A DNA stretch of 62,835 nucleotides, filler included, from Syncephalis fuscata S228 (lineage: Eukaryota; Fungi; Zoopagomycota), in NCBI GenBank assembly GCA_025786725.1. It is 5 parts of 5 records of this genome, joined end to end, with 100 filler letters (N's around TTAATTAATTAA, not from the genome) between each part and the next. Parts side by side here need not be neighbours in the genome. Positions count along the whole stretch, not along the records: positions 14,413 to 32,257 come from JAHLTZ010000189.1; 4 more parts are not named here. One strand, 5' to 3'. A program made the position numbers and the translations under genes. Below the pieces are notes generated by a model. That model was not told the DNA's origin. It ran no database searches and saw nothing but the letters and a program-made list of their open reading frames with translations. Positions 14,413 through 19,159 of this stretch are shown piece by piece. Position 1 is the stretch's first letter, and every line of letters begins with the position of its first letter.

Positions 14413-15668
14413 GGTTGTAAATGAATATTTTAATAACATTCGCGCAATTGCACTGCACATTCACTCTATTGAACATGAGAACAAGTGGTGAGTTTTATTT
14501 AATCGTCACATCATCACACTTATTGCTTTTTTGGGGGATAAATGACTAATATTTAATAACGCCCAATCTATTGAACATGATGATGGGTGGTGAGTGACAT
14601 CAGTCATCAAATACTCGTCATCATAGATTCGTTATCCAGTATGCATATATTATCACAGTATGTGTTGTTACTATTTATACCCGTCATTTTGCTTGATTAA
14701 CATTAAAACCATAACTAATTGACATGATTTAGTCTATTTATAAATAATCTTAATAAAACATAACTCCGTTTATATTCATATTATTTGTTCTATCAATATA
14801 ACTCAGTAAACAAACTAAGTGCGATATTTCAATATTTATTAATAAAAAGGCTGAAACCATACCAACGACGGTTATAAATAGCGTATAGTCAATATACAAT
14901 AAAATAATAAGCATTATAATGAATACACAATATTGAACGAGATTAGCAATGTTTAAGTTATTGAGCATATATGCATGAACAGATGACCGACATTAGTTGG
15001 ACTTTTTTAATAATAAAGCTAGAACAAAAAGGACAACTGCAATAGCTAGTGCGTATTTACTGGACAATAAAGCAGTATATAGAATACTAAATATGCAATA
15101 TAGAGGGACGATTAGCAGTATTAAAGTTATTGAGCATATATGCATGAACAGATTACCGACATTAGCTGACATTTATTAATAATAAAGCTAGAACAAAAGT
15201 AAAAATATATTTGGATACAGAAAGGTTAGACAATTATAAAATGATATATAAAATAATAAATGTACGGCAAGAAAGCATATAAAACGATGTTAAAGTTATA
15301 GTGCATATAACGCAATGAGTGGACTGAGTGAAGTGTAATGAAACATATAAACAATAGAATATGTCTAATGTATTGTAGAATGATACATAGTAGCGTGGGA
15401 CAGAATGGGAATGATATAGGTAAACGGTGGATATATGCATACTGGATAACGAATCTATGATGACGAGTATTTGATGACTGATGTCACTCACCACCCATCA
15501 TCATGTTCAATAGATTGGGCGTTATTAAATATTAGTCATTTGTCCCCCAAAAAGCAATAAATGTGATGATGTAATGATTAAATGAAACTCACCACTTGTC
15601 CCTATATTAAATAAGACAAAAATGTAGTTCAGTTGCGCGAGTGTTATTAAAATATTCATTTGGAACCC
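14413..15668. mobile_element. Non-autonomous long-TIR (MULE/foldback-like) element, left end at contig edge
   Basis: About 240-bp inverted repeats, 14413-14650 versus 15430-15668, with the inner ~110 bp essentially perfect. Right end is ...GGAACCC. An internal ~75-bp direct repeat lies at ~14955 and ~15122. Confidence 0.82.
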
Positions 15669-16277
15669 AAACAACAATAAACTATAATAAACTATAATTA
15701 TTACAACGTATATGAAGACTGGAAGGGCGGCTGGTGGATAAATGCGGTCAAGTGTGAAGAAAAAAGGAAAGTTATGACGTAGATTAGCAGCTATACAATT
15801 GCCAGAATAGATGTATAGTGCTGTTAGTCAAAGCGATAAAGTAATGCGAATGATAAACTAATGCATTTGGTGTCAAACAGTTATTTTAAATGATATTTGC
15901 ATAATAGAACTAGACATTTGTTTTATTGAATACTATTATTCGTTTGTTGCTACCTCCAGTATTTATAAACTTTACTTGTTTTACTCATTCACATATGCAG
16001 ATATACACTGTAAAATTAATGCTACTAATTACATTCTTTTACTTATATATTAATGTACTTGCAATATATATTGTTTATTTATTTACATTACTATTTAATA
16101 GTAATTGCTGTCTATAGTCATATATTAACAATAATAGTATCTATTTATTTATAAGTATTATATATATGATTATTGATGTAGTTATGAGTGTTGCGTACAG
16201 TCAAATAGTAGCAATAACAATAAGATTTTACGTAAACTAAAAATTACGAACGAGTTGCAAAAAACTGCCTCCATTTC

Positions 16278-16395
16278 AACTACGTTCATTGCGCCTAGAA
16301 AGCACCGGATCCCGTCCGATCTCCGAAGTTAAGTTAGGCCGCGCTTCTGTAGTACTGCGGTGGGGGACCACGCGGGAATGAGAAGTAATGTAGTT
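16278..16395 (+). rRNA. 5S rRNA
   Basis: 118 nt with conserved GAAAGCACCGGATCCCGTCCGATCTCCGAAGTTAAG and AGTACT...GGGGACCAC...GGGAA. Helix I (AACTACGTT/AATGTAGTT) and helix II pair correctly. Confidence 0.93.
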
Positions 16396-16403
16396 CCAAG
16401 CTA

Positions 16404-16475
16404 TCTCTGTTAGTATAGTGGCAAGTATACCCGCCTGTCACGCGGGAGACCGGGGTTCAATTCCCCGACAGAGAG
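16404..16475 (+). tRNA. tRNA-Asp(GTC)
   Basis: Acceptor stem TCTCTGT/ACAGAGA plus G discriminator; anticodon arm CCCGC-CTGTCAC-GCGGG; T arm CGGGG-TTCAATT-CCCCG; 72 nt. Confidence 0.97.
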
Positions 16476-16478
16476 CTC

Positions 16479-16483
16479 TTTTT
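16479..16483 (+). terminator. RNA polymerase III T5 terminator
   Basis: First run of four or more T downstream of both the 5S and the tRNA. Confidence 0.8.
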
Positions 16484-16518
16484 GCGCCGTAGCGCTTTAC
16501 TTTTTGCAAATCTAGATT

Positions 16519-19159
16519 ATGAAGGACGAATTAGCGCTGGATCGCGGTAGCGACAGCGATCTTTTATTTTTTAAAACGCAAAAACGGTCAGGGGAAGCTG
16601 AAGATGGTAGATCGCCAGATGATCAGCTTCAAAAAAGGTCACGTACTGCAGATCAGTCTGCATATATTCAGGTAGTTCAAAATTCGCTTGAAATTGTTTT
16701 AGGACAAGAAAGTTTTTTATTTGAGCAAGATGAGTTAAATCTATTTAGCATATACCGTCAACTTGCGGGTAATTTATTGTGTATAAAGGAAAGGATTAAA
16801 CTAATGCTTTAGCATAGTGTCAGCACAACTGCTGTTTGTTCGGCTATATGCGCGAAAGCATAAGTGGATACGTGTGAGCAGTATTGAATATGATGAGATC
16901 AACAATGTTGCCCAGGTGCTGGTTCAGCTAAAAGCTGCGCAGTTGATCGATCAGCATGATGCTGCAGAGAGAATACAAGAATTACTATATACGCTGACTA
17001 GTGAAGAGTTGCGTTGTCTAGGACGTGTACGATCCACTAGCCAGAGATTGTCAAAAAAAGATGAGCTGATTGAACATATTGTGGATCAAGCTCGAACGCA
17101 ACGCAGGCTAATGTTCCAGCGGAATACGGATCAACAGCCGTCATGTCTAGCTATAGATAAAAATAGCGGTTTGAATACGTTGCTAGCACAAGTATTGAAG
17201 ATTACAGGTAAATAATTAAAATATATATTTAATTATAATAACATCATATAGGTGGCGTAGTTCGTTTAAGTAATATGGCTTTGAATGCATTCAATCGATT
17301 GCATACAGTGCGATATCGCTGTGTGCAAATAGATAGTTCTACTATGTTGTCAGCAACGTTGCTTGCAGCGTTTGGTTTACGCCGTTATCCTGCATATACC
17401 GTAAAAAGGTCGTGCAAAGTCTTTCCAAATCGATCTGCTTTATTAGCATATGAAGCGGCTGTTGCAGTTGAACATAAACTACACGAATTAATAGCCGACA
17501 ATAGCAGCGAAAGTATTGAACATGCCTGGCTTCTTTGTCAAGAAAACGAGGCTGCATGGGATCTGACGCTAGTTGAAGCAATGGAAAGCAATGCATACGA
17601 TAAAAACAACTATTTTTTAGCTAGATTTACAGCAGGTGAGGTATATATGTAGCTAAAATCATTTGTATTTAACGGTAAATTAGGATGGGTATACACAAAG
17701 ATTATGGAGCATGGCAGTGAGTTGCTGGGTCGTTTAAAACGTTATCAAGACGAAGCAGTATTATTACAAAAACTGCTTAATCAGCACAGCTTTCGTTTAG
17801 GTACACGTGGTAGCTGGTATGAACGACTTGCACTGGTACAAGAACGATATTTAAAAGATAAACGAGCTGCATTGGCCATTTGTATCAAAGGAATAGAAGA
17901 CCCAAATGTTTGGATGGGTAAGACTAATGTACTTGCTTATTATTTACTGATTTAAGTAATTATTTTAGCCAAATTACAAAGTTTACAGCAACGTATACTT
18001 CGACTGCAAAAAAGTATTAATTTGCCCATAGAAGAGCGCCGTTGTTTTGATCATATTCAAGTCAAACAAACACCTCAAATATTCATTGAAGGTGTCCGTG
18101 CTAATCAAAAAGGACCTGGAGCCAAAGCTAAATATGTTTTAACAGATGGAAGTGAGGGAACTGTTGAAGAGCTGGCACTTGAATATTATACAATGAATGG
18201 CTATCAAGGGTAAATAATTAACTATTACAACATATAACAATAGTATTTATTAACTTAATACAGAGTTCATTCAGAAACAAGTATATTAACAACACTGGTA
18301 AGTAGTAGTAGTTATTTGTTTAAAAAATATATCTAATAAACATATAGTTTGCATTATTATTTTGGGACATATTGTTTAGTGAACATGAGGGTGCATTTGA
18401 AACACCTGAGCAATCAGCGCCTTTAGATCTAACTACTGATGCATTTTATATAGGTAAATAGCCAATAAATAGCCAATTTATTTACTATTTACTAAGTATT
18501 ATTTAAAGGACGCAGAGACAAGATTGAGAAGCGCCTAGAACAACTAGCAATGCCGAATATATCTACAAACGACTCAACATTTTATTTAAAGCAATTGGAA
18601 AAAATAGATGATGCCGAAAGAGCACAACTTACCGTTTGTCGAGGTGTTTCTTGGGAGTATTGTAAGGAAGATTTAATGGATATTGCCCAGGTAAGAACCA
18701 TTTATAGTTATTTATTTGATTATTTAGTAACACATCCATATAGTGTTTAGGTGGGCGTGCATTATCAGCCATTTGCCGAGTATTGGCTCAAGAATATGGT
18801 AAACGTGCCTCTGGTGCACCTGATCTATGGTAAGTATTAATATAATATAAAATAATGCCATCTAACAATAACTATAGCTTATGGAAGAAAAATGAACGTA
18901 TTTGCAAGTTTGTAGAAGGTTTGTAACAAATTTATTACTAATTAATTACTAATTAATTAATTAATACAGTAAAAGGACCAGGTGATCGTTTGTCTGAAAC
19001 TCAAAAGGTATGCTATATATTACAATTCAATATATACTCATACCATTGTTTTTATTGCTAATCTGATTAACATTTAACTGATGGTTATAGATTTGGTGTA
19101 ATGTGTTCATACAACATAATATTGATATTGAAGTATGCCATGTTCGTTTAAGTAAATAA
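16519..19159 (+). CDS. FAN1: Fanconi-associated nuclease 1 (VRR-NUC domain), multi-exon
   Basis: Motifs LFVRLYARKHKW, RGSWYERLAL, TVEELALEYY, HSETSILTTLFALLFWDI, SAPLDL, SGAPDL, VEVKGPGDRLSETQKIW after removing GT-AG introns. Confidence 0.93.

Follow-up and report, generated by a model that had tools for sequence, protein, structure and literature searches.

The window analysed here is a stretch of 62,835 nt of Syncephalis fuscata S228 DNA, and all coordinates are positions along this stretch and not along the contig records. At 16278-16483 it contains a cassette in which a 5S rRNA gene is followed, after a few nucleotides, by a tRNA-Asp(GTC) gene on the same strand. The parts of the cassette, together with a repeat that lies upstream of it, are the following:

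14413 to 15667, no strand: foldback, MITE-like repeat with long inverted arms (14528-14650 with 15431-15553, 99%; 14413-14536 with 15544-15667, 81%)
16223 to 16277 (about -55 to -1), plus strand: conserved 5' flank of the 5S gene, a candidate TFIIIB/initiation region on the basis of its conservation
16278 to 16395, plus strand: 5S rRNA gene of eukaryotic type (RF00001 full model, 106.3 bits, model 1-120, match span 16278-16396)
16396 to 16403, plus strand: 8-nt spacer, CCAAGCTA, with neither a T-run nor a terminator (5S 3' trailer plus pre-tRNA 5' leader)
16404 to 16475 (end 16475/6), plus strand: tRNA-Asp(GTC) gene (ARAGORN; RF00005, 62.2 bits; genome search)
16479 to 16483, plus strand: T5, the first Pol III terminator of the unit, at about +201 counted from A1 of the 5S
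16501 to 16505, plus strand: second (back-up) T5, common to the other Asp cassettes

Helix I of the 5S is closed by A1 (16278) with U118 (16395), and the longest T-run in the 5S gene plus spacer (16278-16403) is of two residues. The RF00001 score, the letters of the spacer and the ARAGORN and RF00005 assignments bear out the first-pass annotation of this DNA, which had described a structurally intact 5S gene before tRNA-Asp(GTC) with an 8-nt spacer free of T-runs. The T5 after the tRNA, which had been taken as the sole one, is followed by the second T5 at 16501-16505. The reading frame of FAN1 starts with an ATG at 16519, around 35 nt past the Pol III terminator, and the promoter or 5' UTR of FAN1 may overlap with the cassette.

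The presence of 5S genes was followed over the whole 29.4-Mb assembly by a CM search and by two pattern scans with three mismatches allowed. The CM search revealed 22 genes; the pattern derived from the 5S 3' half returned an identical set of 22, and that from the 5' half detected 21 of these and nothing additional. All 22 had a tRNA gene on the same strand 7-8 nt downstream, the partners being Gly(GCC) in seven, Asp(GTC) in five, Ile(AAT) in four, and Glu(CTC) and Lys(CTT) in three each. With tRNA genes placed at random, the probability that one starts within 10 nt on the same strand would be about 1.4e-5 per 5S gene, assuming some 80 tRNA genes. The genome-wide RF00001 and tRNA search that had been proposed as a check thus gave a wider scope than the Asp case, with five tRNA partners. 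As seven pairs of cassettes have both flanks in common, the 22 copies correspond to about 15 distinct loci, dispersed over many contigs and with unique downstream flanks. The 5S sequence is nearly identical across all the copies, and the spacers, always of 7-8 nt, fall into five or six sequence families that follow the type of tRNA.

The rDNA contigs (C187 and C202) carry 18S-5.8S-28S without a 5S gene, and none of the 5S matches was located on contigs that continue the rDNA 3' spacer. The 5S genes are therefore dispersed and outside the rDNA unit as assembled; the assembled unit remains open, which leaves a small chance of a collapsed 5S copy with a terminator. Terminator-bearing 5S genes elsewhere in the genome had been put forward as the finding that would speak against a fused gene, and they are absent among the 22 copies from the CM search and both pattern scans, as well as from the assembled rDNA. 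The fused organisation is the only form of 5S seen in the assembly; the 5S-tRNA arrangement exists throughout the genome and, to the extent covered by the assembly, is obligate in both directions.

No run of four or more T was found in the 5S gene plus spacer of any of the 22 copies, the longest being T2 or T3, which means that an oligo-T of its own directly 3' of the 5S is missing in every case. The first T4-T7 run of the cassettes appears at about +198 to +203. In contrast, T4 or longer was present within 12 nt in 27 of 28 solo tRNA loci (Fisher p 1e-10 against 15 distinct 5S loci). A T3 that could permit weak termination is present at the 5S end in 14 of the 22 copies, and eight copies, among them four Asp and three Lys cassettes identified by their spacers, have T2 only. 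All 22 cassettes consequently show the organisation of a Pol III dicistron, with two intact genes on the same strand, a gap of 7-8 nt and the first terminator after the second gene. As a separate observation, the terminators of the tRNA genes, solo and fused, are short (T4 in 10 of the 28 solo loci) and mostly followed by G or GC, and the Pol III of S. fuscata seems to accept T4 as terminator.

For four tRNA species, every gene copy detected in the genome search stands behind a 5S gene: Asp(GTC) 5/5, Gly(GCC) 7/7, Ile(AAT) 4/4 and Glu(CTC) 3/3; for Lys(CTT) the proportion is 3/4. At least some of the cassettes must therefore be functional. The two-codon sets of Asp(GTC), Gly(GCC) and Ile(AAT) are normally decoded by these tRNAs alone, so that the cassettes must give working tRNAs.

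The 16223-16277 flank has 82-88% identity with the cassettes of other tRNAs, whose remaining 0.7-kb flank is missing here. Column conservation over the last ~55 nt before the 5S genes was 0.83-0.86, compared to 0.51 just upstream, and the final ~20 nt are similar to the 5S flank of S. pseudoplumigaleata. This conserved element is placed before the 5S gene and not before the tRNA gene. The AT content at -50 to -10 was 0.65-0.78 before the 5S genes and 0.43-0.45 before the fused tRNAs, where this region is the 5S 3' half; the median for solo tRNAs was 0.80. In yeast, the TFIIIA-C-B complex protects the 5S gene from -45 to +120 (PMC10245719), which covers the same DNA that a tRNA-driven TFIIIB would need in these cassettes. 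Where two tRNA genes stand in tandem, both are transcribed from the promoter of the first, and a GC-rich upstream context penalises the loading of TFIIIB on the downstream gene (PMC2566860). Engineered 5S-tRNA promoters are functional in fungi (PMC8542335, PMC8542773).

A gene encoding nine C2H2 fingers in tandem, with a tenth farther away, was detected at G000:C317 by a relaxed PF00096 scan. As S. pombe TFIIIA has the same ten-finger layout (PMC2566860), the C317 gene is, by the arrangement of its fingers, a probable TFIIIA, the factor whose gene the first-pass annotation had proposed to look for. PDB and Atlas searches with the C317 protein returned generic C2H2 matches only, which did not set it apart from other C2H2 proteins, and the PF22110 (TFIIIA finger) profile had no match in the genome, but none in the controls either. 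The protein searches with the spliced TFIIIA and FAN1 models used each exon by itself. As TFIIIA appears to be intact, a contribution of the tRNA A and B boxes to 5S transcription, which had also been suggested, would be unneeded.

With regard to processing, an RNase P RNA gene is present at C290 (RF00009, 75.8 bits). The predicted Gly, Ile, Glu and Lys precursors, of 202-205 nt, form two separately folded domains, with pairing probabilities of 0.90-0.93 for helix I and 0.84-0.99 for the acceptor stem, and with at most 0.16 cross pairs. The spacer is predicted to be mostly unpaired in the Gly, Ile and Glu cassettes, and that of Lys to pair partly with the trailer. In yeast without Rex1, a 3'-extended 5S remains (cited in PMC2566860).

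From these sequence data, we consider it very likely that the cassettes are obligate 5S-first dicistronic Pol III genes, co-transcribed from the 5S promoter and with their products released by RNase P. According to this proposal, TFIIIA would bind the internal control region of the 5S gene and recruit TFIIIC, which would place TFIIIB on the conserved AT-rich flank, with transcription starting at +1 of the 5S. As no T4 or longer run is encountered, Pol III would read through the 7-8-nt spacer and the tRNA gene to stop at the T4-T7 run. The product would be a 5S-spacer-pre-tRNA of around 200 nt, in which the 5S and the tRNA are predicted to fold apart and to leave the spacer mostly open. RNase P would then cut at +1 of the tRNA, leaving a 5S with a 3' tail of 7-8 nt that a Rex1-type exonuclease could trim, whereas RNase Z or exonucleases would finish the 3' end of the tRNA. 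Starts from the A and B boxes of the tRNA itself would be disfavoured, as they would require TFIIIB to occupy the 3' half of the 5S gene, which is GC-rich and where TFIIIB would overlap the TFIIIA site. The claim in the first-pass annotation that 5S is made as the 5' leader of a pre-tRNA gains support from the 22 of 22 copies without a T4+ run before the tRNA, from the RNase P RNA and from the probable TFIIIA, although co-transcription itself is deduced and not observed.

Such a dicistronic output would tie 5S production to five major tRNAs. It predicts that the 5S matures via RNase P and lacks an oligo-U end, that major tRNAs depend on TFIIIA and that the ratio of 5S to tRNA is set by the design of the gene. 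A bolder extension can be advanced tentatively, as something that we would not expect to hold in all its parts: the Asp-GTC, Gly-GCC, Ile-AAT and Glu-CTC tRNAs might be almost only passengers of TFIIIA-driven 5S transcripts, so that the cell could not supply these tRNAs without TFIIIA or mature its 5S without RNase P, and ribosome capacity would be rigidly coupled to decoding capacity; the downstream B box may help to load TFIIIC on the 5S gene, in which case the promoter would be a type 1/type 2 hybrid, and the Zoopagales as a whole may share this design.

As far as the 5S is concerned, this proposal is compatible with a mixed mode, possible but rather unlikely in our view, in which the 5S is always dicistronic and a large share of the tRNA comes also from tRNA-only initiation on templates free of TFIIIA. 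Cells need more tRNA than 5S, and some of the spacers contain pyrimidine-purine steps that could be used as start sites; on the other hand, the GC-rich context upstream of the fused tRNAs is of the kind that penalises TFIIIB loading for the downstream gene of a tandem tDNA (PMC2566860).

That the cassettes consist of two abutting but separate Pol III units appears improbable. In this case, the 5S transcript would end at a non-canonical signal, either the T2-T3 run or a road-block formed by factors bound to the tRNA gene, and the tRNA would be initiated from its own A and B boxes inside the 5S end or the spacer. The A and B boxes are indeed kept in the fused tRNAs, although the structure of the tRNA requires them too; the T3 of 14 copies could serve as such a signal, and non-canonical Pol III termination is reported for human tDNAs (PMC3141230). 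Against this, eight copies have nothing longer than T2 in a genome where solo tRNAs nearly all use T4 or longer, the TFIIIB of the tRNA would land on GC-rich DNA overlapping the 5S control region, within the span covered by the yeast complex (PMC10245719), and the fixed gap of 7-8 nt would be left without a reason.

The sequences further upstream were also compared. In 18 of the 22 copies, the ~0.7 kb preceding the 5S gene are homologous (65-99%), and this sequence is present only beside 5S genes. Three cassettes with different partners (Ile, Asp and Lys) have a flank of ~1030 bp in common at 96-99% and group in a clade with 100/100 support, while the spacer of each one matches its own tRNA class. 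Beyond this flank, at ~0.8-1.4 kb upstream of most cassettes and also in many other places of the genome, lies a high-copy family of foldback repeats, represented in the window by the element at 14413-15667 with its 123-nt arms at 99% and internal repeats of 169 nt.

These three features can be taken in favour of a mobile-element origin, in which a non-autonomous element with the 5S at its end would insert itself 7-8 bp in front of tRNA genes and the true 5S genes would be elsewhere. Cassandra-like elements and Ty3/TRE5-like targeting offer analogies for this reading, which we nevertheless regard as very unlikely. The flank contains no long ORF (longest Met-ORF of 49-132 aa), and four cassettes, including that at 16278-16483, are without the 0.7-kb flank. 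The 5S is near-invariant while the flanks are about 70% identical, which indicates that it is under selection. The spacers track the tRNA type and not the upstream clade, and thus point to a crossover inside the 5S. The ideas of the spacer as a target-site duplication and of the 5S as a solo LTR were unsupported, as no consistent duplicate of the spacer was found within 1.5 kb and each locus has a single 5S, with no second one as LTR partner. The simplest reading of the upstream pattern is that recombination or gene conversion, with its breakpoint in the identical 5S, has recently swapped upstream flanks between tRNA partners; the pattern is observed, and the mechanism would be a likely explanation for it.

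The possibility that the cassettes are pseudogenes or an assembly artefact, for which copy L022 with its single-base deletions could be adduced, has a minimal probability and is largely refuted by the spread of ~15 loci over many contigs, with five kinds of tRNA partner and a downstream flank peculiar to each locus, by the fact that no Asp, Gly(GCC) or Ile(AAT) decoder was detected outside the cassettes, and by DNA runs that contain about half of the words of the cassette, though these runs possibly come from the source sample itself.

The nearest named relatives of a PIG-M exon in the neighbourhood of the cassette were S. pseudoplumigaleata (77%) and Thamnocephalis (68%). The FAN1-SEC22-PIG-M synteny is kept in S. 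pseudoplumigaleata, which together with the PIG-M relatives places the genome in a Syncephalis-like fungus of the Zoopagales; no synteny at FAN1 was detected in Thamnocephalis. The syntenic contig of S. pseudoplumigaleata (KZ989327.1, L104:11885-12004) has its start ~350 bp upstream of FAN1, where it carries the initial 49 nt of a 5S gene, which lies ~300 bp from the FAN1 start, points away from FAN1 and is therefore inverted compared to S. fuscata; the contig breaks inside the 5S. Judging from this synteny, a dispersed 5S at FAN1 is conserved in S. pseudoplumigaleata, with its putative 3' partner beyond the contig edge. A metagenome scan for a 5S followed by an A box revealed no terminator-less 5S-tRNA fusion, a weak negative, as the scan used one C-box form and had no denominator. 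Of its two matches, one was a 5S that ends in a T5 ahead of a tRNA cluster, and the other a 5S with a T-run and no tRNA. A metagenome contig of 2.1 kb, Ga0163179_10101467 (L099:1-2081), is densely filled with 19 tRNA genes of eukaryotic type on both strands, and a 5S gene that ends in a T5 stands at their head.

The best known counterpart of this organisation is found in the tRNA-5S dicistronic genes of Yarrowia lipolytica (Acker et al. 2008, PMC2566860), where the 5S genes are also dispersed outside the rDNA and fused to a tRNA across a few nt with one terminator, and where the partners overlap in Gly(GCC), Asp(GTC), Glu(CTC) and Lys(CTT). However, the tRNA comes first in Yarrowia, where 48 of 108 copies are fused, TFIIIA can be dispensed with and RNase Z has been proposed to make the cut (PMC2566860). 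In S. fuscata the 5S comes first, all 22 copies are fused, no solo copy was found for four tRNA species, TFIIIA is expected to be required and the cut is probably made by RNase P. As the 5S precedes the tRNA in all 22, the cassettes work as a Pol III dicistron but do not belong to the Yarrowia type. The overlap of partners suggests a convergent coupling of 5S to abundant tRNAs.

In Trichomonascus vanleenenianus, which has a TFIIIA, each 5S gene is likewise reported to stand in tandem with a tRNA gene (PMC13130702), but the gap is of 1-3 bp and the species belongs to the Saccharomycotina, an unrelated lineage; the argument of the authors for the dispensability of TFIIIA implies that the tRNA comes first. 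All the 5S genes of Leishmania major are also associated with tRNA genes, but the gaps average ~200 nt, and the tRNA genes, each with a T-run, are interpreted as monocistronic (PMC2695483). Tandem tRNA-tRNA, tRNA-snoRNA and tRNA-miRNA dicistrons resemble the cassettes in their short gaps, in the terminator after the second gene and in the separation of the products by tRNA enzymes (PMC2566860). In these the leader is always a tRNA, with a type 2 promoter, as it is in every natural heterologous Pol III dicistron listed by Acker et al. (PMC2566860), whereas the leader in S. fuscata is a type 1 (5S) gene. The same order, with a leading 5S promoter and release of the parts by tRNA enzymes, is found in the 5S rRNA-tRNA hybrid promoters engineered for guide RNAs, which are listed as synthetic or hybrid constructs (PMC8542335, PMC8542773, PMC8858515). 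No natural eukaryotic 5S-first dicistron was found in the literature search, which did not cover subscription journals, and the 5S-first order appeared there only in engineered CRISPR promoters.

The rrn operons of bacteria can have distal tRNAs after the 5S (PMC5179076). The 5S and the tRNA are then in one precursor and RNase P acts at the 5' end of the tRNA, but the polymerase is bacterial and the operon includes the whole rRNA. As the 5S and the tRNAs of the cassettes are eukaryotic in type, this likeness represents convergence.

The natural eukaryotic Pol III dicistrons found in the literature are thus tRNA-led, and in S. fuscata the reverse order is the rule for all the assembled 5S genes. 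The cassettes provide natural templates on which it can be tested how type 1 and type 2 promoters of Pol III compete, and are candidate natural parts for guide-RNA expression in early-diverging fungi.

Some additional observations were made on small-RNA genes and rDNA. Two tRNA-Met(CAT) genes (L047 and L048:1501-1620; G000:C176:6760 and C268:236851) have a self-complementary trailer of ~40 nt before their T5, which is missing in a third copy; this trailer is a possible tRNA-trailer small RNA. One tRNA-Ser(GCT) gene (L081:250-382; G000:C157:259798) has a GC-richer 5' flank of ~50 nt, unlike the AT-rich flanks of other solo tRNAs, which is possibly another upstream small RNA. A GTCACGTGAC-type palindrome was observed at ~30-70 nt from several tRNA genes, downstream of them in L007, L009, L013, L016, L021 and L070 and upstream in L037-L039. 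Finally, the 18S and 28S genes (L063:1201-7705, G000:C187) measure 1979 and 3738 nt, compared to 1831 and 3401 in the respective Rfam models, which suggests the presence of expansions or introns.
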